Below are positions 25,420 to 58,800 of a stretch of DNA of 64,000 nt, piece after piece. The stretch spans positions 21,352-85,351 of the forward strand of contig DF237352.1 in assembly GCA_000708835.1 (NCBI GenBank). The letters run 5' to 3'. The position numbers and the translations under genes are program-made. Source of the DNA: Klebsormidium nitens (lineage: Eukaryota; Plantae; Klebsormidiophyceae). The stretch's first letter is position 1. Each line of letters starts with the position of its first letter. The notes below the pieces were generated by a model. The model was not told the DNA's origin and did no database searches. It saw nothing but the letters and a program-made list of their open reading frames with translations.

Positions 25420-28400
25420 TTACTTTCCGGCTCCCCCGAGCCTCAACGCCTGCAGGATTCGGCCACCCCCAGGTGACGGGTGAGGGCCCTTGTAGTTGCC
25501 CAGCTGCACGCGAGTAAACGAAGCATGACGTCATCCTCAAGCAGACTCCAGTTCACATTGTCACCTCAGTTGGCATCAAGGTCTGGAAAAATGCGTCTAA
25601 CTAGTGCGGGTCCAAGAACTCGATCCTTTGCGCTCAGAAGGCTGACCTGATCAAGCTACAGAATAACCGCCGGGTTTCGTGTTTCAAACTTTAGCCAAAC
25701 AAAAGAATTGCCGGACACGTCCTCGACTGAGTCTGCTACACGATGTCAGTCTCTGCCAAACGTACGCTTTGCTGTCGCGAATAAATAGTCTCAGGTCGGG
25801 AACAAGAAGTAAAAGCACACAGCAAGAGCGCTCACCTGCGCTTCGGAGTTTGCCTTTGCTAAAGCCACCAGTCTTTCTTGAGCGGCTTGAATGTTCTCGG
25901 GCTGCAAAAGAAGGAGAGAGACTCAGAACGACACAGAAGGATGCTGGGAAAGGAGTAGACGGCGGGTGTGAAGAAGCTGCAGCCGGTGGTCTTGTATTGA
26001 TTCAACCAGATTACAGGGCTTCAGAATCTTGATGATTCAACGTTTTGAGAAGTCGGGGGCGTTTCTGGAACACAGTATGCTTGAGAGGGCATAAACGGAC
26101 GGCATTCACAGGAAGGCAACTACTGCCGACGCTCGTCGTCTCGGTGAGCACGTGGCAGTTGCTGACATCAGCACTCAGCGGTGGGCCGCGGCAAATTGTA
26201 TTCAAAAGTCGCTCTGTGGAGTTGCTGCAGATGCATCAGCGTGCGCGCAATACACGCAAAGGACGGCACAAATCTTATAAACGACGGTGTTTACACGATC
26301 TGGTATAGTATAGTATGCAGTTGACCGAAATGCGGAACAAGGACGTGAAGATACGCGGTCTGCATGCTTAAGGGACCGGATTGCCAGGCCAGAAAGAAGA
26401 GCGCCGCCAGAGTGAAACTGCATCTCGCAGACATCCACAAATCTCTTTCTTTTTGAGCTTTATATTGTGTATACTTCTCTTCCTTCCTCCTGACGTGATC
26501 GAAGAGAGCAACCCGCCTTGCCCGACCACGTATTGAGCGCCCTTCAGTCGGTCGGGAGGCGTCGTTCATGCTTTTGAAAGACTGGCTCGTCAGCTTCCGG
26601 GTTTCGAAGTTCTCGAATGTCGGAAGAAACCCTAAGATTGAATGAGAGAAACGCTGAATGAGAAGACAAAATCAGCTCACCTTGCGGACCACGTCTTGAG
26701 CGTGCTCGACTGGAGCGCCCTGTCGCACCAGACCAGCTTTTCTCTCATTTTCCCAGCTTTCGAGACAACGAATTTCAAAGAGAGACGAAACCACTCTTTC
26801 TATCGAGAAACAAACCGAGTTCGCAGAGAGACTAGCTCACCTTGCCCGACCACGTCTTGAGCGTGCTCGACTGAAGAGCCCGTCCGTAGGAGAAGGTGAG
26901 CGACCAGGGGTAAGGGCCGTACGCTTGGAGGGCGTTCAGGTTCAGTGTTGCCTCCTCTTCGCTCATGCCCCCGGACAAGAAATGGATGCCTGCGGGTGGA
27001 AATTCGAAGTTTGAGCAACTGCGTACGAGAAGTTGCACCAGGTATCTGAGGATGTTAACAGGTGAGTTGGAGCTATCGGACGGCTCACAGAATTGCCCCT
27101 TACAACCCGCCCTCAGGACTCAAGCTCGTTAGTGTGCTCACGACATGCAGCAAGACGCCCGATTTACGAGGCTGCACGGGGCGATATGCGTTCTATTTAC
27201 CTACTCGCTGCTCTGCCTGCCTGGACGAGGCACCGCAAGGCTGAAGGTGAAGCGCGAGCGTGATACTTTCGTTACTCAGGAGGCTTCACAACTCTATCCG
27301 CTGACTGCAGCGCTTATATAGTCGCTGATGTCACTGATACTCCTGTCACGGTGACACTCAAGTCATCCAAGATCAAATCACAAAGTCTGGTATCTTCTGA
27401 AGCAACCTTGCCTATCTTCTGTCGATATTATTTTGTGCATTGCCCCCGGCGCATCAAGACACCGAACGAAAGGGTTCGAGAATCTCATAGGACTGTCCAC
27501 ACCGTGCAGCAACGCAAAGGCCGCAAGAGGAGGAAAAGGGAGCACACGCCACCTACTTTTGAATAGATCTATGAAGTCAAGTAAACAGCTTTTAAGGTCT
27601 TAACAAATTGAAAAGCACAGAAAGCACCCGGCGGCACTCACTGGGGACTGCGGCAGGGACGCTCCGGAGCATGGTCCGGACGGTGTACTTTGCGACCTCC
27701 TCGGGGGAGGGGGTCGAGACGTCGAGGCCGGGCAGGATCATGTTGGGCTTCAGAAGGATGCCCTCCAACATGACGTCATACTCGTTGAGCAGCCGGAAGG
27801 TGTGGCTGTTCACCTTCTCGCTGATGTAAGCGGTGCGCTCGATGCTGCGGGGAAAGAGTTTACCGGGCAATGGTCAGGGCACGCTCTATAAGACCCATTA
27901 AGAGGGTCGGACACTGTCCCAATGCAGAGGAAGAGAACCGCGTGATGAGAGGTTGATGGAGGATCACCAAAATCACGATCCGTGTCGAAGTGTTTCTGAC
28001 CTAATCTTGAGGTGCATGACCCGCAAGTTGGCCGCACATTTTCGGAGTCCACCTATTCTTCCTCACTATGTCTTCGCTCCATCCAGAGCGCTCGTAAAGC
28101 TCTGCGCACTACAACCATCAGCAGAGAGGGGAAAGGCTGGCAACATCCTAAGAAAAAGGTCTTCGTCCCTGATCAAGTTCCACACAGAATGGAAACAGCA
28201 TCGTAACCCATTTCCATACCTGTAGTCCCCCTCGCCCAGCGTCACTTCCGGTTCCACGATCGGCACCAGCCCGTTGGCCTGGCAGATCTGCGCATAGCGC
28301 GCGAGCGCGTGGCAGTTTTCTAGAATGGCCGTCGAGGACGGGTGCACCGAGCTGTCAACTTTCAGGACTGCGCGCCATTTTGCAAAGCGGGCACCTTGAG

Positions 28401-30768
28401 CATAGTACCTGGAAATCAGGGGTTTTCGGAGTTCTAGCATTTGGCGAAGCACGGCTTTGAGTGTAGTACCTATGGGGGGTTTTGGAATCTTGGTGTACAA
28501 AGGGTCGAACTAGTTGTGATGGTCGATTGACTTTATACTAAACGACCTTCTTCCCAGATTTGTGCACGCAAGCAATTGTGAAGTCTTGAAATGCTTGGCT
28601 TGAATTCGGAGGTGGTCCGGAGGCAGTGCTTCCGGCATTTCATTATTTGGTGATTGTCAGCTCGCAGTTTGTGCAAAGAGTCTGTCCTGAATCTGGCGCT
28701 GGATCCCTGCCTGGCCCAATCAAGTGGAAACCATGAACATCTCATGTCTATGCAAAGTACAAAGAGTCCAAGCGTTTCAGCACAACGGCTTCACGAACTG
28801 TGATTCCAAGCTCGTCCGTTGCACAGAAACCTTCACGAGACTCTTGGAACTGACAGACTGCGACTATTTTTCATGCAAGAAACCTGACTTCTTTTGCCCT
28901 TACTTTTTGCAACGGTCAGCCAGCCCGTCCAGCCCCTGCGTCGACGTCTCCCCGTCGGTCCCGTAGATTGGCTGCAGCCCCGTATCGACCTTGATCCCTG
29001 GCACAATCCCCTGCTTCTGGAGGATCTCAACGAACGGAACGCCGTCCGCGGACGACTGGAACAGCGTCTCGTCGAAGAGAATTGCACCGCTAATGTACTG
29101 CCCGAGCCCAGGGGCGGTGTAGAGGAGCTGGCGCCAGTCACGGCGGTTGTCCTCGGTATTCTCGATGCCCACGCTTCCAAGCCTGCACACATGAGGTGTG
29201 GTAATTTCAGGAGGTCAGTAAGATGTGGGTCCATCATAATGTTTGGCTGCTGTATCTGACTTAGCCGGCTCTAGGGCTGGCTTTGTGCTCACATCCGGTG
29301 CTGACAGCCAAGAGGGGGCTTGAGCTTCACAGTTATTTCAGTTGCAAGAGGGTCGCTAGGCATATCTTGGATTGAATTGACATGCAAAATTGACCGGCTA
29401 TGAGGGTAAGCAAAAGCGACCTTTGTGCAAACTTGCACCCAATGCCCAAAGTGAATTGAGTCTGCGTTGATGGGGAAGCGATTCAAGGAATGGACGAACA
29501 GCAAGCGCATTGGCAGGTGCTTATAATGTCAGTGTTTGGCCCAGGAGTTCAAAGAGGCCTTTCAGCTGAAAGTAGACCCCTCTCAGATGCTCTTACTTCT
29601 AAGCACGTTGTCGCTGAGCAGCAGTCTCAAACATGTGCCGCTTTACTCGTGACACCTATTTGTCCCACTCGTAGGGCAGTAGATCCCTGCGCAGTATCAT
29701 TGATCTCCAAAGAAGAGGCTTATGGAGAATGTCTGTCGCTTTGTTTGACACCCTTGACTTTGCCGAGCTGACTGTCGGAAAACGCACAACTTCCAGGGAT
29801 ATTGAGTCTAGTCAACTGCCTGTCTAAGACCAGAACCCTAATCTGAGAACCCTAGAGTTTTGGCTCACCGCTTCCCCGTCGTCACGTTGCTCTCGTCCGA
29901 CGCCAAAATGCCCTTCCCGGGCGCGCCAATGTAAGCGGCCGTCTTGCGCAACTCCTCCGCATACTGGTTCTCTTTCTCGAAAGCGGTTGTCATCATAATG
30001 CCTGGCCGGCCAGCAGAGGCCTTCCTGGCGGGCAGGATAGCCCTGCCGGCCAATGAGAGGCTGCCAGCTGGCGCCGCACCCACGAAGGTGGAGGCTGCAG
30101 AAGAGGGGTAATATGAAGGTGAGTGGCTTGGGAAATGTTGTAACGTCATGTTGATGGGCGAGTAGAATACGAAGGGGTTCGTCACGTATTCGAATGGGGT
30201 GGATACGTGTATTGGTCAAGGTGGGTGCGGGTGCCAAGGGGCAAATCACAAGACTGGGAATTTAAGGGTTGCTCATTTTCTAATCTCAAAGTAAATTCAC
30301 TACCCCAAAACTGGTTCCACAGATAGGGTTTCATAGTCGAGATTTGCAGGGCACAAGCAATCCTGACGTGGCCTGTGAACTACTTCAGGCCTGAATGTAA
30401 AACTCTGGTCAACAGGAGGTTGCGACTACGCAAATAGCAATGAAAGCACCGGGCGTATGGACACAAAAGCATAATGTCAGCGTTCAGAAAGGCACAGTTG
30501 ACATGGAGCGGTGGCTGATCATAATGCCGCCTGCTGAGCAGATCTTGCCAATCTCTGTAATGTACCAATGTTTTGGTGAATGCCTACAATGCTGACATCC
30601 CTCACATTGCTCCTGACACGAGCAATGTGAAACCTAAGCAGTTTGAGAAAGGTGGCAGCTAACAGGTATTTCCATGAGCAGCAATGCGGGATTTTCAAGC
30701 AGAACAATACCTTGAAGACTGCTCTGCTTAAGCGCAGACCCCTGCGCCATCTGTGCCGCCGACGCCAT
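25420..30768 (-). CDS. FBA: Fructose-bisphosphate aldolase class I, plastid-targeted (417 aa, 8 exons)
   Basis: Exons 30711-30768, 29869-30094, 28904-29182, 28220-28408, 27642-27844, 26841-26989, 25836-25901, 25420-25503 total 1254 nt in frame. Motifs [37 protein letters not shown] (Schiff-base Lys), [14 protein letters not shown]. Ala/Ser-rich N-terminal transit-peptide-like segment. Confidence 0.95.
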
Positions 30769-35215: not shown

Positions 35216-38200
35216 TCATTGCCTGCCGGAACTGACTTCCACAATCTCCGGCTCGGGCCTGTGGTTGTCCGACTTCCTGATCGTGGATAGCCTATCGTCC
35301 TCCTCATACTCCGGCAGCTTCGCCTTGCCGCGCGCCTTCTTCGCCGCCTCCGCGGCCGCGGCCGCGGCTTCCTCGGGCGTTGCAACCGTCGCCGCTTCCT
35401 CTGCTTCGCTCACGGGCCTGACCATCGCCCGGGGGGTGCCAGCCGACCGCTTCTTGAAGCAGTGAACATAGACCAGGAGCGCCCCGATGACCATTCCCGG
35501 GAACCCGATCCCCATCGCAAGCGAGACCCCCAACCCGATCCCCCAGTGCCGCGCCGCGTTGTAGTGCCGGGCCGGGGGCGCTGTAACGTTCCCGCCGGAC
35601 GACCCGTTGCCGTTACCGCTGCCGCTGCCGGTCGGGACGTCCAGGATTGTCGCGTTGGTGGTGTTTCCGCGGCTCGGGGGGGATCCCACGGTGGGCGAAC
35701 TAGGCTGGGCGAGAAGGGAGCCGTCCAGTCGGAAGACGCATAAACCGGTCTGGGTAAGCGACCAGCCGTCGGCGCACTGGGAACAATCGGCGCCGGCGTG
35801 ACCGGTGAAGCAGTCGCAAACACCGGTGGAGTCGAGGCAGCGGCCCGCGCCCGCGCACGGCTGCCCGGCGCGGGCCCCCAGGGCGGGGGCGGGGCAGAGC
35901 ATGGGCACGAATTGGCAGTCCTGGGGAGAAGGAAGGAGTATGAGAGGTGGAAAACTTGAATGGAGGGCGCGAGGAAGAAATAGCGAGTTCCGATTGCGGA
36001 GAAGATGCCCAGAAATAGTGGATTTGTGTCTTCTATCTTGCCGCTTTAGATTTGGGTGAATGCAAGTAGCGAGGGGGAAAGTGGAAACGTGCTTCACTTT
36101 CGACTGAAACTTCGCGAAAGGGCGTTGGTTCATGATCGTTCTGCCAAACGCCTCGGCAGCGCGGTCATTTCATAACGACAGGAGCACTAGTATTTGCAAC
36201 AAGAAGAGCATATTTTTGATTTCCTCTCAAGAGCGATGTCAAGCATGTTACTATCAGCATTTGAAACTCGATCGGTCCGTCACAATATACCAGCTCTCCA
36301 AGAAAGAGTTGACTCATAAACTCATGATTTGAAAGGAAAATGCTGAAACCCCATACAAACTGCCCGAGCAAGGTCCTGCAATTCTGAAGGATTCCACCTC
36401 CGAAAAGCGCACCTCCCAATTCTCTCCACCCACCCAGCCCCTCACCTGGTAGCAGCAAGCGACCGGTAGGCCAGTCACCGGGTCGGTGTCATTCCCCATT
36501 GTCGCGCTTGTTCCCTGCGCGGTGCACCGTTCCCCGAGCTCGCACATGCCGTTCCCGCAGACGCCCGCCTTTTGCACGTGGGTCACGGCGGTCAGGGCCG
36601 CGCCGGACAGCCACAGGTCCTGTCCGTCGGAGTTCTGGCCGACCGACTGCAGCGGAAGAACGGAAGAGGTTGATTGAAGAGGTTTGTGCTTTTGAACTGA
36701 ACCGACGACTGAGTACTTAGAGCAGCGCCGAGCAGCCACAGGCTCTGTCCGTCGGCGTTCTGGCCGACCGGATGGAGCGGAAAACGGAACGGATGAGTTG
36801 ACGCTTTTCAGAAGGAAGTGCTGGTCAGTGAAGGATAATGCAGGGGCGCTTCGGACAGCCACAGGCTCTTTCCGGCGGAATTCTGGCCGACCAACTGCAG
36901 CGGATAACGGAACGGGTTGAATTCAGCGGTTTGAATGAAGCGACTTGCATTAAAGCGGTTTGGAACGAAGCGGTCAGCGTGGGATGAGTGGTTAAGCTGC
37001 GCCGAGCAGCCGCAGGCTTTGTCCGTCGGAGTTTCGGCCGATCGAATGCAGCGGAAGACGGACAGTGGCAAAAGCGGGTTGGATCAAAGCGTCGAACGAA
37101 GAACGAACGACGGAACGAAGGAACGAGGGATGAAACAAGAGCCAAAGACGTGATCCTCTCTGAAAGTTAAATTGGCGACGGGCTCCTTCAGGCGGCGCTC
37201 GGGTAGTCTGCCCCCAGCCAAAAGGACCCGCTTAGAGCAGGTCCGATTGGCCAAGCACGAAAAAAGGCCCCCTTTGAGATGCATCGAAAGAAGTAAGCAT
37301 CCAAAGGAGAGCACAACCTCCATTATTACGAATGCAAAATTGAGGAACTTCTTAGAGAAGTACGATTCACCCAGATAAGGACACGGAAAATGCAGTCATC
37401 TGAGAAACAAGTCGAATCATCTTACGAGACCCAACAATCAGCCACAGGGGCTCCAAGGTTTTTGTAACCACAAGGAACCAAGGTCGGATCGCAAAATGGT
37501 CCAGCCCAACCTTAATCTCAAAACCTAAAACTCTAAAACTCCCTTTACCAGCGTCAAAGCTGCTTGAGTCGCGGCCGCGTGTGTGATCACGGCTCCCGCG
37601 GTCAGCCCAACTGCGGAAACAGTGCTCTCAATGGCCAGCAGGTCGCCGTTGCTGTTATCTACGGCCATGCTGCGGACGGCGACACCCTCGAGCGCGACGC
37701 CGACCGCGGCCGCGAGCTGCAAGAGCAAAACGGGGTTTGAAGATCGGCTTAAGAATCGGCCAGCGACAGGCAGAGCGGAGTGGGACAAATTTGCAGGCGG
37801 AAGCTGCTGAAGCTTTGAACTTTTGAAAATTGCTACAGTACCTCACGAGCCTTTGTGCTAAGAAAACTTGATTGCAGATGCACTTCTTCCGATAAGCGGA
37901 ATCAGTCCCAGCCAGTCTCAGAAAAAAACTCCCGCTTTCTGTTCCCGGACTCCATGCTCAAGATTTGCAATCCTTCGAAGCTCAGACCGTTTGCCTTGAC
38001 CAAACAGAACAGCTCTTTCACGTTGACCAGACTCTTGTCACAACTTCGACCAAAGGGATTACGGAGATTCGGGTTGAAACGGAGAAGCCGAAGTCAGCCG
38101 AAGGGCTTCTCGATCTCACAAAAGTTTTGCCTGACTCTTTTCCAAAATCCTTCCTGATGTAAATAGCACGCAAGCACACAACTCAGACCGAGGGTTAGCG

Positions 38201-41200
38201 CACTAACCCGCTTCCTGAAGTCCAGCTGGAAGGGAGCGTAGTAGGCGGAGGAGTTGTCCGCGTACGGGGCCGCGCCCCCGCTGACGTCAAGCGTGACGCC
38301 CACCATGCTGACGCAGCTCGTGCCGTCACCGTCGCAGATGGAGCACTCATCCAGTTGGCCGCTGCAGAGACTCGACGGAGAGGAGTTCAGTACGGCATGC
38401 TTTTGCTTGCACCTCTGAGGCAGAAGATAAAACGGGGTAAGAAGCGAGAAGACATTTCTATTCTTCACTCTTTCGCTCCACCGCTTTGTGACCCTCTATA
38501 AGCTCAATCAGACAAGCTAATCTCCAACAAGATCTTCCGACCCTCTAAGTCCTTGCACCGAAAGCCGCTAGATGGAAAGACCTCGATCCGCAATATCTCA
38601 ATTCTCAGAATGGCACACCCCCTGAACAATAGCGGCGGCAGGCCAGATCTCTGAGGTTCCCCGAACCCCCCAAACCCCCTCACCTCGCGCAGCAAACGCC
38701 CTTCTCGTCGCGCACCGTCGCGCAGCAGCGCCCGAGCGCGTCCACGCTCGTCGACGCCCCGTCGCACACTCCGCACGCGTCCACGTGTCCGCTCTCGCAG
38801 CACTCGCCGGCGGCGTCCACGACCGCGGCCGCGGCCGCGCAGCACTGCGCGCGCGCGCCCACGACTCCCGAGAGGCAGCACGTGCCGCCTTCGGCCCCGG
38901 AGGGGATCCCTGGGCACGTGGTCGGGGTTTCGCAGAGGTCGCCCTTCCAGCCGGGGGCGCACTGGCAGAACGACCGGTTGATGCAGGTGCCGTGGCCGGA
39001 GCAGTTCTGCGGGAAGAGAGGGAACAGTGTGAGAATCTGCTACCAAGAGAAGAGCAATGCTTTTCGTTATGACGTGACCAAAACAGAAGCAAGCCCGTTC
39101 CGGCCCAGATGGCGAGTCCCTACAAAACCAGACCGAGTCTTGAAGAACGACGCGTGAATTTCGTTACAGGTCTCCCTGGAGCATCTATCCTGTATGTTCC
39201 CTCCATTTACCGTAACAAATCTCATCAATTCCATCCATTGTGTCTCCACGTTTCTCACTATGATCCAATTTTTGAGATTTCCCTGTTTCGAGATTTCTTT
39301 CAGCCTTGCGAGCATCCACTGAACAGATGTATCAAGCATCAAGCGGCTATTGCAGCCACGTTTCGGCGTCGAAGATAATGCCACTCACCTTGCAGTAGTC
39401 GCAGTTCGACGCGGTGCTCCGGCACCCCTGCGTCTCGCCGGGCTTGATCAGACCGGCGGCGTCGCAGAAGGAGCCGTCCCTCGTTAACCCTTGCTGGTCA
39501 ACGCACTCAACCACCCGGGTTTGCACGGAACTGCAGTTAGCGGTGACCGGGCAGTCGCCCCACGGGGAGGCAAGCCACGTGATCGCTTGGCAGGGCTGCA
39601 GGTTGCACGGCTTGGAAGTGGGCGGGGCACCTGCGGGGTTAAAGACTCTGGTCAGGGGAAACTGTTAAAACGATTGTTTTTGCTTGATGAGGAGATAGCC
39701 AGGCACTTTCAAAAGGGCATCTGGGAGGGGGGCAAAGATGAGAAGGAAACAGGAGTTCAGGCTTCGTCAGCGTCAGCCTTTTTAAGATATCACGGGGGGC
39801 AGGCTATTGAGGAAATTTGGGGTCTCTGAAGATCATGAAGAAGGAAGTGTTTGAACATTGTGACTGTGAACTACATCAAGATTATGAAGATCAACAGAGA
39901 CAAGGGCATCGGGGATGCCTGAAGGTAAAAGGCGCCAGAAAAACAGGTCTTCGCTTATCAGAGCCATCATCTGCTAGGCGATCCTCCAAACCGGTACTTA
40001 TCTCACTTTTCGGCACTCGCTCTCATCATACGCGCCCCATAATGTGCCACGTCGGTAACGTTTCCAGTCGCGGTATCGACGCATTGGAGCTCCCTTATAA
40101 TCACTACTCAAAGCAATGTAAGTAGTAGTAAATACTCAAGCCTTTCAAACATGTTCCAGGTCCGGCGCTCACTCTCATCATACGCGCCCCCGCAATTTGC
40201 CACGTCGGTCAGATTTCCAGTCGCCGTTTCGACGCACTGGAGGTCCCGGGTGACCGTGCCCCCGCCGCACGGCCGGTTGCACTGCGACCAACCGGGCACC
40301 GCCCAGTAGTACTGCCCGCACGCTGACGTGGCGCAGGGCTGTGACGTGGCCGGCGCGGGTTGGCCGGCGCACGCGGAGGCCTCGACGAGGTTGCCGTTGG
40401 CGTCCTGGGGGAACGGAGAGAGGCGGATTTCAGTAGCTGAATGTAGAGGCGAATTTTGTCAGGCGTATGAGACCTTGTTGATGGGATTGCCTTCCAAGAT
40501 CTTTCAGGATCTTGGGCTCAATTTATGGATTGGACTCTTGTCGTTTGAAACCATTCGTGAAAAGGGTGAAGACAGGAGGACCGGAAAAAGGGCCTCGCAA
40601 ACGGATTTCTTCACTGTGAGACCGCGAAACCGAGCACAGATCCAAAACCTCTTCCTAGATAGTTTGTCCACAACCAAAAAGGCCCGTTTGAAAGTTCGAA
40701 ATGGCTCCGAGAAGTCCTGATATTCTGATCCCCCAAACCCCGCAGTCCAAAGATTCAAGGTAACAGTTTTTCTTGTAGGAGGCCGCCTCTACAGCCGACG
40801 AGACATCACTTGCTGTTCATTCGCCGGACTTCAAACCAAGGCAGGGCAACCGCGCGCTAACAAAGCTCCCTAAACGGTCGCCGCAAACCTTACCTTGCAT
40901 TTTACTGTCTCTGTCTGTATTCCTCCGCCGCAATTCATTGGGCACTCGGACCAGAGTCTAGAAACCTAGCGACGACAAAGCAGGGCAACCGCGGGCTAAG
41001 GAAGCCCCTCGAACGGTCGCCGCAATCCTCACCTTGCACTAATCCGCCTGCGTCTGTGTTCCCCCGCCGCAAGTCACCGGGCACTCGGACCAGATTCCAG
41101 AACTCTAGCAGAAGAATAAGAGGGCGACCGCGCGCTGGAAAAGCTGCCCAGATGGTCGCCAAATTTCTCACCTTGCAGTAAACCGCCTGCGTCTGCGTTC

Positions 41201-44200
41201 CCCCGCCGCAAGTCACCGGGCACTCGGACCAGCCAGCCGCGAACCACGAGTACTCGGGGCACGCCACCTGGTTGCACGCCTGTGACGTCAGCGGCGTGTC
41301 CGCGTCGCAGTTGCTGACGTCGACGACGTTGCCGATGGTGTCCTCGCAGAAGGCCGTCCGCGTCTGCAAAGGAACGGGGGCGAGATGTTGAGAATGTATG
41401 AACGTGGGGTTGTAGAGTAGACGAGTCTGAACCAGTGAGATACGAAGTAGTAAGCTTTGACTCGATGCGGGTTTGTAGGGTGAGCGTGCACTCGGGCTGG
41501 CTTGTTTGTGTCTGAGGGGGTCTGATTCATAGATTCTGCGTGCGTGAGCTTGGTTCAAGATTCGCTTTCAAAAGGTGGAATGGACTTTTGTGCTCCATCC
41601 AGTAGAGGCACACGTCACTTGGTTGAAGGTGGGCAGCAAAGCCCTTGTAGAAAATGAATGCTCAATCACAATCCCAAAAGGTGTCCGGTGCTTAAGAAAA
41701 TCTGTAAATGGCTAGTTGATTTCAGCACACTGACGATCCGTCCAGAGTTCTAGGGCTTATGCACACGCCCGCACGTGGTGGAGCGCATTCACACCTGCAT
41801 GCCGCCGCCGCAAGACGCGCTGCACGCGCTCCAGTCGGTGGTGACCCACGAGTACACCGAGAAAAGGCCGCCCGTTCCGGGTCCTTTTCCGGTTCCGCTG
41901 GTTCCGTTCTGCTGCTTGGCCACCCAGTAGTTCCAGCGTGTGATCACGCCCTTGCTGACGGTCTGGACCGGCGCGGGAACGTTAGCGGGAACCTCGGTCG
42001 CGTTCACAATCTCGCCGACGCTGCGCGGCCAGGCCTGGCCAGACGGGGCTGCAACAGAAAAGCAGACCACTTAGGAAAATCTAAAAGTCCTTTCTGGATT
42101 TGAAAATGTAGGATGTCGAATAGAGTTCAGGATTTGAAGGTTAGATCAGTGGTATGCGGGCGTTGTACGAGTTTCATCAAAGGTACGGGGCTGGGATTGG
42201 TCGCATGGAGCTACAGTGAAGACAGGTAAACTGAAAGTCGGGATAGTGAGCCACTCTAACGCCCTGCTGCTAACAGTCAGAAATGGCTTCTACAGAAATT
42301 AAGAACTCGAAGTTGGCCGTTGGCCCCGATCTCTTATACTCAAAAGATCGGAAATAGGAAAGGCCAAAAGTTTGGAGTCTTCCAGACAAAGAGAGCTACG
42401 AGTTCCAAAATCGAATCTTTCCACCCGGTCACAAAAGCGACACGAGTGCACAAAGTGCGTGCGCTCGGCAATGCTGACGCCAGCTCACGTGGGGTTGACG
42501 TCACAATGTTGATCCCGTACGGCCCATTCGCGCCGTTGTATCCGTCGACCACGATGTAGTACGTCTGGCCCCCGGTCATGGGAAGGTTGTACATCGCACT
42601 CTGGACGTTGCAGTAGTCGTCGTTACACCAACCGGGGATGAGCGAAGCGGAACCGGAGCCGGTCTTCTGGTAGATCGCCATCATGGTGTCAAACTGGGTC
42701 GTGCTGCACAGGCGGGGAGAAAGGTATTGATATTTTGACACCACATTTAACGAAAATTAACAGTAGTCGTCGTTACACCAACCAGGGATGAGCGACGCGG
42801 TTCCGGAGCCGGTCTTCTGGTAGATCGCCATCATGGTGTCAAAGTGGGCCGTGCTGCAGAGCCGGGAAGCAAGGTGTGACGGCTTTGACACCAGTACCCA
42901 GGCAATTCGCCCCTCGAAAGTGTTGCGGTATTAGTCGTTTCGTCGATCGGTTGGGACGCGGAAGGCGGCGGGCAGAACGGTTGACAGGTTGCTTGCCTTT
43001 CAAAATAATCCGTTTGATCATCTTCGTTCGGTTTGAAACGCTGAGACCGAGCCAACCCTGGGTTTTGTGAGACCTATACTGACAGAGATTCGATCGCGGC
43101 GGTTCCTCATCGGTTTGGCGATTGATGATGACAACATTGGGCTTTGCTGAAATGGTTTTAGGGCCTGCTAAGGAGGACAATGATTCGCACTTCGAAGAGC
43201 AAGCAGGCGAGTGATTCTCAAGATTCACAGTAAACACAGGCTGCTCTTCTATCCACTCTGTTTGGCCAGCCCACTCGCGACCTGAAATCAAGTAGACTCA
43301 TTGCAGCAAAATCAGGCGTAGAACTCGAGGACGACAGACGATGGGAGCGCATTCACCTTGAGCACAGGTCGACGCTGACGCTCATGCTCCAGGGCGGTGT
43401 GAACGCGTACACAACGTCCGGCCCCGACCCGGTGCAGCCGCCGTCGTTGTAATTGTCCTGGTAACCGGTGGTTGTCCATTCGTGGTAGAACGGGAGCTTC
43501 GGGACAACCTTGGGATTGGCGAACGTGTCCCCGCATGAGCGGCAGACGTCTGCGAAACGGGGTTAAACCTCGCTTAGTTACTCGGTTAGGAAGTGGGTTA
43601 ACGAGAGGAGGACCGTTGTTGTACGACGGGAGCTTCGGGACTACTTTGGGGTCTGCGAACGTGTCGCCACATGAGCGGCAGACGTCTGGAAGAATGGGGT
43701 TATCACTTCGTTGAGAGGTTGGTTAATGCAGGGTCGACGCTCAACGACCATTCGTGGTAAAACGGGAGCTTGGGGATCACTTTGGGGTCGGCGAACGTAT
43801 CGCCGCATATGAGCGGCAGACGTCCACGAGATTGGGTTTAAAAAGGGGGTTAAGGTTCAAGAAGCGGGTTTAGAAAAGGCTGGAAACTTGGAAACCGTCG
43901 GCATGGGGGCTTGGGGACCACTTTCGGGTTGGCGAAGGTGTCGCCACATGAGCGGCAGACGTCTGCGAGACGGGGTTGAGAAGCGGGTTAATGGTTAAGA
44001 GGCGGGTTTTAAAAAGGCTGGAAGCTTAGGAACCTTCGATATAAAATGAGAGCTTGGGGAGCACTTTGGGGTTTGCGAGCGTGTCGCCGCATGAGCAGAC
44101 GTCTGCGAAATGGGGTTACGCATTGGGCTTCTCGGTTGAAAAGATGCGGTTCAGAGATGGTTCGAATCTGAAAATGGAGTTAGTTGGTCAATTTGCAAAT

Positions 44201-47200
44201 GCATGAAACGGGCGTCGGAAAGCACACAACTAGTTGCCTTTGCTTGTGAAGTTGTGTGTGGAGAGCAGAATCGGAATGGAGAACAACGATTTTGGGAATC
44301 TCACAAAACGCACTCGCCGTCTTACCCGTGTCTTGGGAGTCCAGGTAACCTTCCAGCGTGCGCATGAAACGGGCGTCCCGGCTGATGAAGTTAAACTGGA
44401 TTAGGCTGGTGTGGTCCAAGTAATCTGTACACAGACACAGGAAGAACAGTCAGTGTGAAAAGCTCAATGGCAAGAGCAGTCACCGTGGCTGTGAAGAAGC
44501 ATTATGAGGACCAGCTCGATAAGAAGAAGCTCGGCCAAAAGTGCGCTTACAGTGATTGCAGGAATGCTCGGGTTTACAAGCACCATCTCGTTATGAAGCG
44601 CGTAGGTGAGTGCGGTAAGTGTGGATCCGACGACTTTCACAAATTTTCAAAAGCATCCTTGTTTGAAAAGCTAAGGTGACGAGCACAGTTTCAATGGGCC
44701 TGTGTTCGGAAGGATTTGAGCTCGCAAGCTTTACTGTTCCACTACATAAAGATCTGACTGGCGGACAGTTGCCAGCGTCTACTGAGTCGTCCGCCTGCTC
44801 TCCAATCTTCTTTGAGCTCCGAAATGAGGTCACAGTTAGCTTAATCTCCCGCTTGGTATTTGTAAGCAGCACCTCTACGGCGCTATCCGTACGGAACACG
44901 CAGACCAAGAGAGAGTCCTACGTAGTTTCTGTACCGGCGTATCGTGACGCTTTCACGGGTCACTGGTTGCTATACCTTCCACTAAGAGTTGCTTTGCAGA
45001 AAATAAAAGGCCCAAGGCCCCTCCGCTTGAAGTACCCTGAACCCAATTGGTTACGTTGACCGCACCCCCACCCATTATATACCCCAAGCTAGCCCTACCT
45101 ATCCTTTACGCCCAAGGCATCTGTACCCGTTTCGCGGGGCTGAGTTTGATCAAGTCCGCTGTGAGAAGAAAGCCAGATTTATTGAAACTTTCAGGTTGTC
45201 ACGTGAAACAAAAAGATGGAAAAACTGCTCACCCGCCAGTCGGGGGACGGCCAAGGCCACGGCCTGCGGCGTTTGCCAGTTGCTCGAGTCGAAGGTCAGG
45301 CGAGACGGAACAAAACGGCCTGCAAGAAACTTCCGTTTTACTCTGGAGTTGGCCGTCGAAAAAGCACCCAAGATGGAGAAATCATCATCCGCAACAGAGA
45401 GATCGTGCGGTTGTGGGAGCACGCTCAGCATTCTCGGACAGTCGACTAGAAACGTCTCAGACCGTCTCAGCCTGACTTGAAGTTACAAGCCTGACGAAAT
45501 CATAAGGTGAGCTTCAAAGCATCGCTCACCAATCCCCCCGACTGTCATCGCCGGTTGCAGATACACGGGGTTCGCCGGCCGCGCCTTGAGCCTGACCGTG
45601 ATTGCCTTCTTCGAGTTCTCTGACGTCACCCAGCTGCGGGGGCTGACGTCAACCAGGGGCGAGCTCAGGCGGGTGTTCATCAGGCTGGTCGGGGTTCCGG
45701 TTCCGGGGATGGTGTTCCGGACGGTGTTCGGCAGAGTTCCGTCCAGCAGCGCCTGGCGGACTTCGGAGGGGCGCGCGTAGATGTTGGCCGAGAGGTACAG
45801 CGCGGCCGCGCCCGCCTGAAAAAGGGTTTGGGGTTTGGGGTTCGAGGATTGGGTTGCGGTCGAAAGGAGGGCGGCCGCGGCCGCGTCAAGCGGGAACAAG
45901 CTGAGATACGTTATGCGTTGGGCATAGGCAAACGGTGTGCGAATGAGAAGCCCTAAACTGGTGACCGTTCGAACAATCACCGAACCCTCCTCTGAGGATG
46001 CGAAAGATCACTTCTTGAAATCTCAAGCCTCAGGTTTCAGCCATCGAAAATACTGATTGAATTTTCGAGGGACGCCTTTAAAACTTCTCTCGTGGCTGCT
46101 ATAGCTCCCCGTTACCATCTTTGATGACCTATCTCGTGAAAAGCGTCTTCATTCTCTAGATTCCTGTACGCGCCCGCACCGGACTAGCCAAAGCACGAGC
46201 CTGAGGTTTTTCCGAGGCTTTACCACGAGCCAATTTCGCAGACATCATCACCGTACCGTGGTAGCGAACAAAAATTCCATCTGGCTTCCAGCCACAAGCA
46301 ATCAAACGTAAACCCGAAAGGCTTGGGCAAGCACTGAAAACGCGCGCGCGCTCGCTCACCACGAAGGGGGTCGCCATGGACGTTCCGCTGAGGGTCACGA
46401 TTCCGGTGTCGCTCGCGTAGCTCGCGCTGTCGATGTCCTCGCCCTGTGGGGAAAGAGGCGCGACGGTTTAGTTTGCGGTTAAACGTAACCTCCCAGAGGT
46501 AGTTCTGATAATCCAGGGCGCTCAGCAACTCTATGCTCTATAACACACCGTCGTAACAACGTTAAGACTGTTATCTTCTGCAGCGAAACGCTTTGATAGA
46601 TTGGTTGTAAATTTGGACTGAGAGAGCGTAACTTCTGCCGATCCAGTCGAAGAAGTAGGGGTCACACTCGACTCTGTATCCACCTGTAGGGGCTTGGGAT
46701 ATGCTCTTTCCGTTTGCATCAAGATCAGGCCACACGTTACCTGGAATACGAAGAGTGATTACGCCACCTGCTCTTCCTAGGACTGGGCCGTGATAGCCAG
46801 GTTGAAACAAGGACACGATTTAAACTGAGATGACGGCGGAAGAATGTCGAGCAAGCTGCGCAGCTTACCGGCGCGAAGAGCGTGGTGCACGAGCCGTAGT
46901 TGGAGAACCAGCTGATCGAGTCCGCGCGATTGGTAGCGCCCACTGCAATCACCGACTGCAGAAAGAGTGGAAGCGGGTTTGACCTTTAACATCAAGAGAT
47001 CCGACATCAGAGGCCGTTCTATTGGTATGGCCCACCCTTGGGTCGTCTAGGCCTGAGGAACTGAGTTGACGACCGCATGTCAGGATCAGACTGGCGTTTC
47101 TTGTGTAACGAGTAAGATTTACGTTCCGGGCAGCGCTGCAGAGTATGCGGTTTGCGGAGTCAGGACAAACACATCAGTATAAGTGTCCAAACGGAACGCT

Positions 47201-50200
47201 TTACAATCTGATGGTGTACGAAGAGCATGGCCTGAACGCATCCAACAGTACTTAGGCACGCTTATCGAAGTCTGATCGTCGGGTAAGTCGGTAAGAATTT
47301 GCTTACAGTTGCGCGCGCAGGCGAGTAGTTGCAGGTGTTCTGCGCGAAATTGCCGGCGGCCGCAACCACCGTGATTCCGCTCGTGGCAACCAGGTTGTTA
47401 ACCGCCTGGTCAAGGCTAACCGAGGTGGGGGTCGTGATTGACATGGAGACGACAGCTGGCATCTGCTTATTGGCCGCGATCCAGTCCAGCCCCGCGATGA
47501 TGTTGCCGTAGCCGCCGTTTCCGTCGCAGCCCATTGCGCGGACTGCGATGAGCGAAAAACGAGATTATGAGTACGTTCCGTTCCGTTGTTTTGACTGAGC
47601 GCAAGTCTGCTCTGTAAACAGACGAAAGGAGATTTTGCGAGCTTTTCTAGATCCTGACGAGCAGCGAAGGTGGGTGTCACCGCGCTTTCGCTTGCATTGA
47701 GGAGCAGACGCAGATGGAATGGCAGGAATGTGAGTGTTCCGTTTCCAGCGAGAGGGACTCGTTGTTTGGAGGGATTTTTTTTTCGATAGCAAGGGAGGCA
47801 AAATCATGCCTCGGTGGCTAAGCATGCAGCCTCCGAATCGAGTACTTTGGTTTCCACTTGGAGCCTGGACTCCGTTCTCAGGACGGATGCAGATCGGAGT
47901 GCAGATTTGCTTTCAGCACAAATTGTATCTTGATGGTTCGGCTCGGACTGGAAGACCGGATTCAAACTTTTGTGGATTGACTCGCATGCCAGGAAAAGAG
48001 ATGACTTTGCAAAGACTTTGCGTGCTTCGTCGAGCCGCTAAGGCTCTCGCAACGGTTCACACATGGAGCAACCTCCACTTGAGACAACACAGCTCGAACA
48101 CAATCCAAGCCAGACCCGGTCTGAAGGAAAGGAGGGAGTCGCTGGATAGCTGCAACTCGTCGCTTCGGCAACTACTTCGAGCGACTCGAACATTCAACAT
48201 CGTAAGCTTCTGCTCGGGAGACTAGTAAAAAGGACAAACGCCCAAGCGCACCAGAATGGATGTATGCGTTCTTGGCGAGCCCCGAGACCCGCCCCGCCAC
48301 GATGCCGGCGCAGTGCGTGCCGTGACCGTTGCAGTCTCCGGTGCCCTGGCCATCCCCCACGGCGTTAAACCCGGTTAGCACGCGGCTGCGCGACCCGTCC
48401 ATGGTCAGAAAGTCCTGATGGCTTGCGCGCACGCCCTGCGAAAACCAGATTCACCTGAGGGTTAGCTGGCAATTAAATGACTGGTAGTCGAAGTTGTAAG
48501 TCCTGATGGCCCGCACACTCGCCCTGCAGAAACCTGATTTCGACGACTCTAAGAGGGTGGTTAGCGGACTGGTAGGTGGGGTTAGTGAGTCCGGTTGATG
48601 TCCCGTCAAACCTCATAATGCTTTGGTTGGTCGCACGCAAACCTGTACTCGCAACCTCTGAACGTTTGCCCGTTTTTATGTTGCGACGAAACAACGACCA
48701 GCAAAGCTCGCTTCTATGAAACATTGAAGCTCCATAGTTCGACATTCATGAAAGTAGGAGCTTCAACAGCAAAAGAACGAATCACTGACGCCGTCACTCC
48801 CCAACGTTTCAAAATGGTAAGAGGTCGATTGGGAGCAGCTGATAACAAGCAATATTCTTCTCCAGAATACAGGGATGCAGACGTTGGTTCCTTGCAATGC
48901 AGGTAAGGACCTTACAAAGATGAGCTGCCATGTCCAGCTTACCGTATCGATGATATAGACGTGCACCCCGGTTCCGTCCATCGGGTAGTTGTAGGTATAC
49001 GTGTTATCCAACGTTGCGCCCCCAGGGTTCTGATCGCTCCTGTCAACTCCCCATGGGGGCCGGGATTGCGTCGCTGCGATCGACGCCGTTTTCGGGACCT
49101 CCAGAGTGGCGATGACGTCTTTGTTGTCGGCGAGCAAACCCACTAGGTTAGGCCCGGTTATGTTGATCGTGAACCCCTGGACGAGCGTGTTGAAGCGACG
49201 CGTGCAGATGCCGAGCTGACGACCCTCGACCTAGAGCAATATGAGGCAAGGGTGTAGTTCGTATCAGCTTTTTGTTTTGTAAGTTTTGGATAAGTGCTCA
49301 GTAATCGTTAGGCAGCTAAAAGGTTATCATCAATCTTGGTTGGATAGTGACAGTGCTTGGGGTTGTTTAGTCTCGATATGGTGGGGAGGCATTGATGATG
49401 CCAGCGAGGGGCGGCTGTTGACGTACGAGACACTGTAGAGTCCACCGGAAACCGGTCGACTAGAATTCAAACTCAGTCAAAGCGTTTGGTCAGAACCCTG
49501 CTTGGAGCTCAACGGGCAAACGTCCTCATTCGGTGGTACGTGCTCACAAAAATGGGCTTGGGTTTGAGGGCGTCATTTAGTCGAGTTCATCAAGTTTTTC
49601 CAGGTCCCATCAAACTCGCCGAGATTGCTCCGATGCCCTCCGTCGATGTATATGCAGCATCATCAGTCCTTTTACCTGCTTGCTCTAACCAGTGCAAGGG
49701 GTGGATCAGCCAGCATTTCATTTGACTCCCCAATAAGCGTTGCAACGGCCACAACACATGAGATCTGTTTAAATCCTTTGTTCAGATGCAAAACTTCAGT
49801 CAGCAGTGGTCATGCGAGTCAGTTGTGTTGCTAAAACAGAATTTTGGCAGAAACATTGATGAAGCAAGAGGCATCAGTTACTCTGCCAGTCATGCTTAGG
49901 TAGCTCAATTGAAAAAGCTATAAGAAGCAGTGTCTCCAATTCCTCTTGAGCAAACAAACCAGGAAGTCGACGCAACTTGTCCCAAAGCAACAGTCTTTGA
50001 GGGGCTAGGAGGGAGGGTCCTGTGAACCCTAACTAATGAAAAGGTGAAGCTTAACCGAATGGAGCTTCAAAAGAGTTCATCATGAGCTTGAACATTCAAC
50101 GCATGTTGAAGCCATTGCCAACCTTTGAATTTCGATCTTAAGTGAATTACCAGGCTGCTGTTAAGTGGAAGCGTGATCGAACCAGCAAAGGATGAAAAAG

Positions 50201-50594
50201 TATGTAGTGGAATTTAGCACAAAGCCGTGTCACATTTGTCTCAACAACAGGGATCACAAATCCCTGTGCAAACCAAGCGCGGGCGGTGCCTCACATTGTT
50301 GCAGATCTGATCCGCTGTCCCATTGGCCGTCGTATTCTTCAGCAAGATGATGTACTCTTGCGGGGTCTCTAAGCCACGCAAGCTGACAAAGGACCCATTG
50401 CTGGCCCCCCGGAAAGCTTGATCACAGGAATGAAGCACAGGGAGTCCCTTCCCCAGACTGCAAACATGGTACCCATTTCCTGTGCTGGAGCTACTTCCTG
50501 ACTTTCTGCCATCAGACTGGAGCACAGCCTGTGTGCATCCTAGAAAAAGAAGGATGAGAGCTAGGGTGCCAGCAAGCTGCTTGGGGAAATGCAT
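35216..50594 (-). CDS. Type I membrane subtilisin-like protease (S8, proteinase K-like) with I9-type propeptide, PPC-like domain, 4 TSP1 repeats, EGF/Cys-rich modules and TM (about 1417 aa, 19 exons)
   Basis: Exons 50473-50594, 50295-50382, 48943-49230, 48252-48435, 47307-47542, 46869-46955, 46360-46443, 45530-45815, 43357-43549, 42489-42703, 41795-42048, 41172-41363, 40173-40404, 39389-39630, 38684-39006, 38208-38361, 37549-37716, 36446-36646, 35216-35920 total 4254 nt with consistent phases. Signal peptide; triad VYIIDTG, HGTHCAG, GTSMATP; oxyanion AAAGN; WSxCxxxCGGG repeats; CSGHGTC EGF; TM WGIGLGVSLAMGIGFPGMVIGALLVYV. Confidence 0.9.
36650..37060 (-). repeat. Degenerate intronic copies of the acceptor and start of the 36646 exon
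   Basis: Copies of agccacagg(c)tc(t)gtccgtcgg.gttctggccgacc at about 36735, 36857 and 37007. Confidence 0.75.
40790..41240 (-). repeat. Tandem copies of the TSP1 exon 3' end and donor (about 138-bp period)
   Basis: ccgccgcaa(g)tcaccgggcactcggaccag at about 41203, 41065 and 40924, each with an accttgca donor echo. Confidence 0.85.
43500..44110 (-). repeat. Five copies of acceptor plus exon start (about 135-140 bp period)
   Basis: gaacgtgtc(g)cc(a)catgagcggcagacgtc ending near 43552 (true exon), 43687, 43824, 43964 and 44104. Confidence 0.85.
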
Positions 50595-55885: not shown

Positions 55886-58800
55886 ATGGCTCAGGTCCAA
55901 TGCTGCGGGGCAGAAAGCAGCAGCTATCTTCACAATCAGTATCACAGCCAGGAGGGCAAATGGCAGGATGAAGACGTTCTGAGGCGCCCTAAGTGCCTAA
56001 GCATTGGCCATGGTGACTTACAGGCAGTCAAGAAGCCGCGCTCCGAACTTTTTGCAGTATTTGCTTTTCTTGGACTACTGCTCCTCGGAATCCAGACTGG
56101 GCCCTTCACCCAAAAGTCGAAGGAAAAGCTTGGCACTTGTGAACGTCAGCCGCTGGCAGCTCCATTCCTCAAAATGTCCAATGCACCCTCTCAGGAACAG
56201 GCTGCAGGCAGGCCAAAAGGGTGTGGAGGTGGAGTCTCTGTGAGAGGGGCTGACGGGCAGTTTAGGAAGAGAAGCTGGAAGGATATCTCCCCAGAACGAA
56301 GCAGCGGCAGCAATGATACAACACAACCAGATGTGAGTCACCAGAGAGCACCAAGCAATGCAACTCTTCCTGGGCAAGAGCCACTTCAGTCTCAGGTGGA
56401 CTGGGCCGAGGATGGCGGCGATTGGAGTAGCCAGTCTGATTCATTCCAGCGAGAGCCGTCGGTGCTCGATGTCTACACCCACCAGCTGCTCAGCATCTTG
56501 GAGGAATGCGTGCCCCCTGTTCTGCCGCTTGGTCCAGATGACGTTGATGAGGTCCTGGAAAGCACTTTCTGCTTTCCTACTTTTGTTGAGACAAAGGGGG
56601 TTTTAAACTACGACTCATTCGTAATGCCGGGGGTCTGTGAGGTCCCGCTTGTAGGTGGTGGAATAGCAGTGGCCCATTGGTGCAACTGCTGTCCAGAGCT
56701 AGAATTACAACGGTGCATCTTTAGTGGCATTCCCCAAGGGAAGCAGGAAATGTCTTACCTTGAGAGCCAGGCGCCACAGTGCATTCACCTAAAGGCGCTG
56801 TTCAAGCTTGGGGATGCTGTCGAGCTGACGGCTTCTAAACTTTGCGCACGGTCCAGTGAAAGCAGCAGAGCGCAGTCCAGTGGCGAGCAAGTTGCTGAGG
56901 AGCGTGTCCTTCTCCTCCCGTTTCGGGGTACTGCACCCAAGGCAGCTTTGGTAGGGACAACACGGTCGGATTGTGTTGTGGTTGTAGAGAAGAGTCCTGG
57001 ACGTTGGAACTGCACCGAGTGCTACGGCAAGGGGAAGATAAAGTGCTGGCATGTGCAAAGGGTGATGGGGCCAGGGGCGTCTTTTGAATATTCGAGGATG
57101 ACGCCAGAGCAGTTTGAGGAGCAGTTGGCTCAGGATTTTGACAAGACCACAGGAAAACGTAGGCTGAAGTGCCTCTCTCGGGCGGCTGTTCGGGAAGCAC
57201 ACCGGGCAGACCAGGATTTGGCCAGCCTACTGATGCGAAGAGGCACGGGTCAGGTTGGCTTCCCTGCGGTGTGTCAAGTCGGCGCGCCTTCGGAAGGAGA
57301 GTGCGGGAGCTGCAAACGGCCTTGGGCGGACTCCTTCGTGTCTCTGGTGTCGGGTACGATCTTCCACCTGCTTGCGCCTGTCCAAACTCAAGTCCAGGTT
57401 CGGACCTGCCCATGTGGGCGCACTGTTTGGCATTACGGCGGTCGTGCGGATGGCATTTTGAACTTCAACGACAAGTATCTCTACTCCTACGAGATCCTGC
57501 AATGGTGAGTTTACTGTGTAACTTGTAGTAAGTTCATTGATTCGCTCGTTTGGTCATGCTGGTTTGCTTTGACTTGCTTTTCTTTTGAGGTTGCCATCCT
57601 TCTACGGTTGTCTGTCGCAGGTGGTTACTACACGTCTTCTCACAGGCCTACTTTTTAGGGGCTGCTCTTGAAAGGGAGCCAGTTCAAGTGGTTGCCAATT
57701 CTGCTGCTTTGGTGTTTGATCAAGGGAGACGTTTCGAGTCCGAAGTCAGAAATGTCAGACATAGCCGCTTTGTCAATCAGCCGCCCTGACTCGCCAGTCT
57801 CTTTTCCGACGTCTGCAGTCCGCACAGATAGCAAAGTCTTTTGATCCGCTTGGCACATCCAATTCAGTGAGTTGCTGCTTGCGTCAATCTCAATCTTGTC
57901 AGGCACAGTTGGTCGGCGTCGCAGTTAAGGTGGAAAATTAACTGAATGAAACGGCTTCTATGTGCCCGACAAATGTGCTTGACCGGCTGGGGAAGCGTAT
58001 GCTTTTATGCATGTTGCGAAAGCACTGTACTCAAGAGGTTATCCTTCACGCTTTTGCTTGAATTCTGATTAAGCCACTGCTTTTGCGTTTGAATTGTACC
58101 TCTTAAGGACTCCCGTTTATGCAGAAACTTTCACCGACTTCCTCAACACAAGCTAAGAAAGTTTTCTGTAGGTGGTGTCATCTGACAGGCTCGCAAGGCG
58201 TGAGGGTCAGTATGAAGTTTTTATGGACATTGTTGAAATATATCTTGAGATTATCATCGTGATTTTCGAACTGCACTCGAATATCTACTGACTCTCATTG
58301 CTTTTCTTGCGTCGTTCTAGGTATGCCAACCAGATGTGGCGCGCTAAAGTGCCATTTGTGTCCATGTGGGAATCCGTTCTGTCAATGTACCTCGCTGCGG
58401 GCGTCGACAAGGAGGCCCTCAAGTTGTACATCAACCAACGTCAGGCGTTCCAAGACGCCTTCTTTGACTACATCACCCTACTCGACATCAACTACTCTAC
58501 GTCGTTCCGCTGTACGTGCGCCCCTCCGGAGGGGGTGTCGCCAGCGGATCACGAGCCATCTGAGCTCATCGGGGACGGTGTTACACTTGGTTATCGGGCA
58601 GATCTTAGCTACCTTGTAACACCTTGGAAGCGTGACAACACGGCTGAGCTAAAGACTGGTTCCCTTCATCAGAACCGGACGTTCGTGCAGAATGCTCAGA
58701 TCCGCGGGGCTCTACTCCGATTTGCACAGCCACCGGGGAAGGCAGGAGCGGGACTGATAGAGGACGAGTTAGAGCAACTGCGAACCTCCCTTTCAAACAC

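Follow-up and report, generated by a model that had tools for sequence, protein, structure and literature searches.

A predicted membrane-anchored proteinase K-type subtilase with ADAMTS-type thrombospondin repeats in Klebsormidium nitens and its green-lineage relatives

A 64,000-nt stretch of the Klebsormidium nitens genome (assembly GCA_000708835.1, contig DF237352.1, positions 21,352 to 85,351; hereafter the window, in whose coordinates all positions are given) contains one intact gene of 20 exons on the minus strand (50594..35216), predicted to encode a type I membrane protein of 1509 residues. The protein joins an S8 serine protease (subtilase) to four thrombospondin type 1 (TSP1) repeats of the ADAMTS type, two EGF-like domains, a Cys-rich region, and a C-terminal transmembrane helix. 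We infer that its likeliest function is that of a self-activating cell-surface protease docked by ancillary domains, and we put the probability of this reading of the gene, its topology, and its function at roughly 0.6. The gene is already deposited and named for its architecture in GenBank/UniProt as 'Subtilisin-related protease with thrombospondin repeats [Klebsormidium nitens]' (P0022, 1414 residues), which means that the gene itself is no discovery and that what the analysis adds is a picture of the family. The family links streptophyte algae to liverworts and mosses, appears trimmed in ferns and lycophytes, and was not found in seed plants in the searches described below.

We scanned the stop-free frame segments of the minus strand piecewise against Pfam and conducted full-length analyses on the deposited protein P0022, which was retrieved by a word search with a Calypogeia protein as the query. 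P0022 mapped at 100% identity to 19 exons (exons 2–20) from 49230 to 35219, with 18/18 junctions of the GT-AG type. With exon 1 added, the gene has 19 introns, all GT-AG, and a frame and phase count over the 20 exons gave 1509 codons plus a stop codon with no internal stops. Another entry, P0001, is a 71% identical fragment. The coding segments are as follows.

35216..50594, minus strand: whole coding region (P0022 mapping plus the added exon 1)
50594-50295, 49230-48943, 48435-48252, 47542-47307, 46955-46869, minus strand: exons 1–5
46443-46360, 45815-45530, 45319-45233, 44424-44326, 43549-43357, minus strand: exons 6–10
42703-42489, 42048-41795, 41363-41172, 40404-40173, 39630-39389, minus strand: exons 11–15
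39006-38684, 38361-38208, 37716-37549, 36646-36446, 35920-35216, minus strand: exons 16–20

Pfam placed Peptidase_S8 in four of these exons, TSP1_ADAMTS in four, and EGF-type domains in two, and the same three kinds of domain were found in P0022 (Peptidase_S8, 4e-41; TSP1_ADAMTS, 4e-37, in four stretches; two EGF-type domains). Combining these matches with direct reading of the codons, a hydropathy scan, and a structural model of a fern orthologue gave the domain order below.

50526..50594, minus strand: signal peptide of ~23 residues with a hydrophobic core, ending in ...TQA (direct reading; absent from the deposited model)
49075..50525, minus strand: predicted I9-like propeptide (remainder of exon 1 and initial 52 codons of exon 2)
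45675..49074, minus strand: S8 catalytic domain of the proteinase K/aqualysin subfamily (exons 2–7; PF00082)
48946-48948, 48322-48324, 47349-47351, and 46378-46380, minus strand: catalytic Asp, His, oxyanion Asn, and Ser codons (direct reading)
44326..45674, minus strand: Ig/Fn3-like beta-sandwich (3' half of exon 7 and exons 8 and 9)
42489..43549, minus strand: beta-sandwich resembling PPC/collagen-binding domains (exons 10 and 11; by the fold of the fern orthologue domain)
39389..41848, minus strand: four ADAMTS-type TSP1 repeats (PF19030), starting at 41848, 41246, 40305, and ~39570
38926..39006, minus strand: first EGF-like domain (EGF_Teneurin 5e-8, EGF_2, EGF; P0022 residues 899-925)
36446..38925, minus strand: Cys-rich region (exons 16–19; no Pfam family)
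35783..35866, minus strand: second EGF-like domain (EGF_2 8e-6, EGF_laminin; P0022 residues 1199-1226)
35546..35743, minus strand: Ser/Gly/Thr/Pro-rich stalk with four N-glycosylation sequons (direct reading)
35456..35545 (approximate), minus strand: single transmembrane helix, followed by KK (hydropathy scan)
35216..35455, minus strand: Glu/Ala/Lys-rich cytoplasmic tail of ~80 residues and stop codon (direct reading; P0022 ends at 35219)

The 5' end differs between our model and the deposited one. The first five residues of P0022, MDNPH, match only 51725-51711 on the minus strand, 1.1 kb upstream of the signal-peptide exon. Because this site is followed by ATATGG and not by a GT donor, P0022 seems to have a wrong N-terminus that lacks the signal peptide. 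The exon beginning at 50594 comprises 100 codons, encodes a typical signal sequence, ends at a GTGAGG donor (50294), and joins in phase 0 (GT..AG) to the acceptor of exon 2 at 49230, which P0022 also uses. It matched the family alignment over positions 32-89 with 94% probability (hhalign, E 1e-7), and the N-termini of the Calypogeia, Marchantia, and Ceratopteris proteins aligned to it by tblastn; the orthologues start with N-terminal hydrophobic signal sequences. An earlier sequence-only reading of the window had placed the start at 50594 with a signal-peptide exon, and splice phase, family profile, and tblastn all bear this out. For the deposited Klebsormidium model, this amounts to a predicted correction of the gene start.

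The protease belongs to the proteinase K type. P0022 scored 141.6 bits against PF00082 (cut-off 21.8), and its closest solved relatives were a Thermus extracellular serine proteinase (8c4z, 5e-70) and aqualysin-1 (7e-70), followed by a Vibrio proteinase and proteinase K. Over the S8 domain, the Thermus enzyme and aqualysin-1 are ~50% identical to the Klebsormidium protein, and the alignment matches the triad, the oxyanion Asn, and four disulfide Cys. Subtilisins BPN' and Carlsberg gave far weaker matches than the proteinase K-type enzymes, which one S8 exon alone already selected as its best solved relatives. The Asp/His/Ser triad and the oxyanion Asn were invariant in a 13-member family alignment that spans chlorophytes, streptophyte algae, bryophytes, and a fern. 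The propeptide, which is split by an intron of 1064 nt, was not matched by the Pfam I9 family (PF05922) in the exons, P0022, or the 13 family members. In sequence alignments P0022 residues 18-57 do pair with the ends of the PCSK9 and pro-proteinase K prodomains, and the fern orthologue model can be superposed on PCSK9 and pro-subtilisin together with their prodomains. The signal peptide and complete S8 triad noticed in the sequence-only reading were recovered from the codons, and the propeptide noticed there is a probable one that Pfam does not recognize.

Two beta-sandwich domains follow the protease, and their assignment comes mainly from a model of a 689-residue fern orthologue that ends right after the PPC-like domain. 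The model, built with the family alignment as input, had an overall predicted local distance difference test (pLDDT) score of 66, with values of 70-93 in the two post-protease domains and low confidence in the S8 part; its fold matches came from a structure search against representatives. The counterpart of the first sandwich (fern residues 440-549) was all-beta, with pLDDT 83-93 and a match to an Ig-like domain at Z 11.0, and distant sequence matches of this region were repeat proteins with fn3_6/Big_2. The last fern domain matched the collagen-binding domain of ColG at Z 13.3 (root-mean-square deviation 2.2 A over 112 residues), with a second ColG match at Z 12.9, the ColH collagen-binding domain at Z 12.1, and the PPC domain of a B. 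anthracis collagenase at Z 11.4. The fern domain was tied to Klebsormidium exons 10 and 11 by tblastn (3e-10 and 1.5e-14), and a look-alike search of the ESM Atlas with the Klebsormidium segment gave a lead to PPC clusters (score 0.87). Pfam PF04151 (PPC) found no match in the exons, P0022, or the 13 members at E up to 1, and NCBIfam found none in the unexplained exons. Since Pfam finds no PPC domain in any member, the call rests on fold. The 'PPC-like' label of the earlier reading is therefore supported by the modelled fold, which is that of the fern orthologue and not of the Klebsormidium protein itself, and is not supported by Pfam.

The four repeats that had been likened to those of animal ADAMTS proteases are of that type, as judged by PF19030 in four exon scans and in P0022, where the ADAMTS-type profile was far stronger than PF00090 (4e-37 vs 1e-9). 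Repeats 1–3 are each interrupted by an intron and repeat 4 lies inside exon 15; repeats 1 and 2 carry a CxxS/TCxxG motif. The first EGF-like domain opens the next exon and leads into the Cys-rich region, in which exons 16 and 17 contain CC...CC repeats with DxCGVCDG / DECSICDGDGTSC, exon 18 is Ala/Val-rich, and exon 19 carries CGNGMCELGERC. The CC / DxCGVCDG and CGNGxCExGE motifs are kept in the family consensus. No Pfam family matched the Cys-rich module in the exons or the 13 members, and the clusters that the ESM Atlas returned were all unnamed and scored 0.81-0.83, no higher than expected by chance. A likeness of DxCGVCDGDG...C to a motif of the ADAMTS Cys-rich/spacer region was considered, but no ADAMTS_CR/spacer Pfam match was obtained and we do not claim it. 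All of the C-terminal parts described earlier from the letters, namely the two EGF domains, both Cys motifs, the Ser/Gly stalk, the transmembrane helix, and the charged tail, are present in the gene.

Other algal TSP1 proteins share the TSP1-EGF-Cys-rich-EGF module at 86-99% coverage. Proteins P0144, P0147, P0219, and P0224 (environmental contigs, Auxenochlorella, and Raphidocelis) carry it over 26-99% (86-99% for the first three) without a protease, and the module therefore also exists on its own.

We searched 1.84 billion representatives with exon 7 (45531-45815, the S8 C-terminus and linker) using HMMER and obtained 13 matches, among them proteins of 1878 residues from Calypogeia fissa and 1403 residues from Marchantia polymorpha. 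Both have S8 with three to four TSP1_ADAMTS repeats, plus EGF in Calypogeia, and both are colinear with the window from the propeptide to the last EGF; in total four orthologues were colinear on the window by tblastn. Independent gene predictions gave the fused layout in Calypogeia, Marchantia (two annotations), two Riccia species, Physcomitrium, Sphagnum, and two Closterium strains, with named orthologues including Marchantia MPTK1_3g13090, Calypogeia CAM6098029.1, a Physcomitrium 'uncharacterized protein', and Closterium CAI5934011.1. S8 and TSP1 also occurred together on single Tetraselmis transcriptome contigs, in Trebouxia, and in one environmental contig. A hydropathy scan found a signal sequence and one C-terminal transmembrane helix in most full-length orthologues, the helix being present in Calypogeia, Marchantia, Riccia, Physcomitrium, Trebouxia, and Tetraselmis.

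A short form of 690-810 residues, consisting of only the protease, sandwich, and PPC domains without TSP1, EGF, or a transmembrane helix, was found in two Ceratopteris genes, Adiantum, and the lycophyte Diphasiastrum (P0006, P0263, P0264, and P0265). Two word-based searches, with Calypogeia and fern queries, found no seed-plant member, a result that holds for that database and search type only. The next-best eukaryotic matches to the fern short form were I9+S8 proteins of sea cucumbers and the crown-of-thorns starfish (P0266, P0275, and P0364), which ranked above most bacteria at 31-42% identity and up to 73% coverage.

A maximum-likelihood tree of S8 with 15 eukaryotic and 28 bacterial rows (only long bacterial proteins, with redundant cluster members omitted) resolved the streptophyte proteins as a clade with 100/99 support, in which the order of Klebsormidium, Zygnematophyceae, and land plants reproduced the species tree. 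On these sequences the streptophyte S8-TSP1 family is vertically inherited. The Klebsormidium S8 falls inside this clade, and the whole protein shows the colinear family order of signal peptide, propeptide, S8, sandwich, PPC-like domain, several TSP1 repeats, EGF, Cys-rich region, EGF, and transmembrane helix. Chlorophyte S8-TSP1 proteins formed a separate, long-branched group between the streptophyte clade and the bacterial rows. Because the tree is unrooted, it decides neither on a single green-lineage origin nor on a bacterial source.

The sequence-only reading had set this algal architecture against that of land-plant subtilases. That contrast stands for the SBT type, and it does not extend to liverworts and mosses, which share the full architecture, or to ferns and the lycophyte, which keep the short form. 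The same reading had allowed that the architecture might already be common and characterized: it is already deposited and occurs in several lineages, and our literature search turned up no publication about the family or Mp3g13090. A paper on plant subtilase evolution (PMC6713707) mentions neither thrombospondin nor transmembrane forms.

The Klebsormidium protein shares with ADAMTS proteins the layout of propeptide, protease, TSP1 repeats, and a Cys-rich part, as well as the TSP1 Pfam type PF19030, and the repeat region matches animal ADAMTS and ADAMTS-like proteins at 30-36% identity, which is expected because TSP1 repeats are common to both. The catalytic domains differ, as the Klebsormidium protein is a serine (S8) protease and ADAMTS enzymes are zinc reprolysins; ADAMTS enzymes are also secreted, whereas the Klebsormidium protein is predicted to be membrane-anchored. 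Neither reprolysin (PF01421) nor related families matched P0022 or the 13 members at E up to 1, and the disintegrin-like, ADAMTS Cys-rich, and spacer families (PF00200, PF17771, PF19236, and PF05986) likewise found no match in P0022 or the 13 members. Judged by domain content, the likeness to ADAMTS is one of layout and not of membership, and the absence of any reprolysin, disintegrin, or ADAMTS spacer domain makes the earlier description of the protein as convergent with ADAMTS fair for the layout. Separately, a transcript of the euglenid Ploeotia vitrea (P0135/P0254, EukProt transcriptome) encodes reprolysin, disintegrin, and ~15 TSP1_ADAMTS repeats, which, unless it reflects contamination, would place a metalloprotease layout like that of ADAMTS outside animals.

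Aqualysin-1 and the Thermus and Vibrio proteinases resemble the Klebsormidium protein in catalytic identity (~50%), in the triad and both disulfides, and in having a PPC-fold domain after the protease; many members of the proteinase K subfamily have C-terminal PPC-type extensions. These bacterial enzymes are, however, small and secreted, and lack the TSP1, EGF, and Cys-rich modules, the transmembrane helix, and the tail. Site-1 protease (S1P, MBTPS1) and Plasmodium SUB2 share the type I topology with S8 facing the lumen or the outside, and S1P was a generic fold match of the fern orthologue model (8uw8, Z 17.2), but both belong to a different S8 subfamily and lack the TSP1/EGF/PPC set. S1P functions in SREBP processing and SUB2 in adhesin shedding. 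Land-plant SBT1-5 proteins also have the S8 fold followed by a beta-sandwich (tomato SBT3, 3i6s, Z 14.3). Unlike them, the Klebsormidium S8 has no inserted PA domain and is nearest to proteinase K-type and not pyrolysin-type enzymes; Pfam found no PA or fn3_6 domain in P0022 or the family members.

If the protein works as a docked cell-surface protease, the zymogen would activate itself by removing its propeptide, as in other S8 enzymes, and the protease would then act at the cell surface. With its PPC, TSP1, EGF, and Cys-rich domains the enzyme may dock on glycoproteins of the wall or matrix or select its substrates among them, a proposal modelled on the role of such domains in ADAMTS enzymes, and cleavage in the stalk could free the ectodomain. 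Remodelling of the wall or matrix, adhesion, and ectodomain shedding, as suggested in the sequence-only reading, are putative functions. Several observations weigh against this reading. The propeptide and the PPC domain go unrecognized by Pfam, and the deposited model uses a different first exon without a signal peptide (MDNPH, 51725-51711). PCSK9, of the same S8 subfamily, keeps an intact triad and yet acts by binding rather than by cleaving a substrate, so intact catalytic residues do not prove substrate cleavage. Finally, we know of no plant or alga in which the ligands of TSP1, EGF, or PPC domains have been established.

The PCSK9 precedent leads to an alternative in which the protein acts chiefly in adhesion or as a receptor and its subtilase cuts only its own propeptide, which stays bound, with S8 serving as a binding module. 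The Klebsormidium S8 does lie in the proteinase K subfamily with PCSK9 (E ~1e-41 to PCSK9 chains), PCSK9 with its prodomain was the top structural match of the fern orthologue model (Z 25.5), and the large TSP1/EGF/Cys-rich ectodomain, transmembrane helix, and tail resemble a receptor. Its identity to broad-range proteases is nevertheless much higher (aqualysin, Thermus, and Vibrio enzymes, E 1e-57 to 5e-70), and the invariance of the triad, oxyanion Asn, and disulfide Cys runs from chlorophytes to the fern; we consider a pure binding role unlikely. We would give a similarly small chance to an ectodomain that is shed or processed so that the protease and PPC part becomes a soluble secreted enzyme, with the anchor needed only for trafficking or timed release. 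Such release fits the secreted bacterial relatives of this S8 type and the fern and lycophyte short form, which stops right after the PPC domain and indicates that the N-terminal half can stand alone. Against it, Klebsormidium, mosses, liverworts, and chlorophytes have all kept the long anchored form, which argues that anchoring and the ancillary domains matter.

Errors of the locus itself are much less probable than either alternative. Two neighbouring genes, one for a secreted subtilase and one for a TSP1/EGF membrane protein, could have been merged by gene prediction, and both halves do occur separately, as protease-free TSP1-EGF-Cys-rich proteins in other algae (P0144 and P0219) and as protease-only short forms in ferns. 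The frame, however, continues through canonical introns without a stop, the TSP1 exons are not preceded by a start codon or signal peptide context, and at least nine species with independent annotations, as well as Tetraselmis transcripts, show the same fused layout. The continuous frame, canonical introns, and recurrence of the layout make a merger very improbable, and they uphold the single-gene reading that had been made from the letters. Lowest of all we rank a copy that is decaying or not expressed. Introns 9, 10, and 13 contain tandem echoes of exon ends that could hint at decay, but these duplicates lie outside the coding exons, 20/20 exons are intact without stops or frameshifts, and all catalytic residues and conserved Cys are in place.

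A wider and more tentative possibility, which we regard as doubtful, is that a green-lineage counterpart of ADAMTS enzymes or sheddases predates the chlorophyte-streptophyte split. In this scenario, TSP1, EGF, and collagen-binding-type domains would direct a membrane-anchored serine protease to glycoproteins of the wall or matrix or to ligands at the surface; bryophytes would have retained it, ferns and lycophytes would have reduced it to the protease-PPC core, and seed plants would have lost it. Animal matrix proteins and parasite adhesins are the usual context of TSP1 and EGF modules, and if this scenario were true, a piece of 'animal-like' extracellular matrix biology would have been present in early land plants. 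The family is in any case a candidate pericellular protease or adhesion system with orthologues in the genetically tractable Marchantia and Physcomitrium.

The echo copies form tandem arrays with units of 136-150 nt in 2-5 copies, each unit comprising an exon end and adjacent intron.

43565..44120, minus strand: intron 9 array of four extra copies of the intron/exon-10 start at 136-143 nt spacing, outside the coding model
42704-42893, minus strand: intron 10 duplicate of the exon-11 start, 150 nt
40837..41171, minus strand: intron 13 array of copies of the exon 13 3' end, 139-nt unit

The arrays as a whole span 43476-44120, 42611-42893, and 40837-41232. They leave 'echo' open reading frames (ORFs) of 20-24 residues that are 70-95% identical to the real exon by tblastn (78-95% in intron 9), and no echo copy is used in the deposited model.

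An Rfam scan of the 64-kb window found no structured RNA match, and the composition of the window is eukaryotic. We found no functional link between the subtilase gene and two neighbours. One, 5 kb upstream of the gene, is a 540-codon ORF on the plus strand (55886-57508) with a CxC4 cysteine cluster typical of KDZ transposases, probably a transposon copy. The other, on the minus strand (28066-28500), is an exon of a class I fructose-bisphosphate aldolase gene (Pfam Glycolytic, 3e-24).

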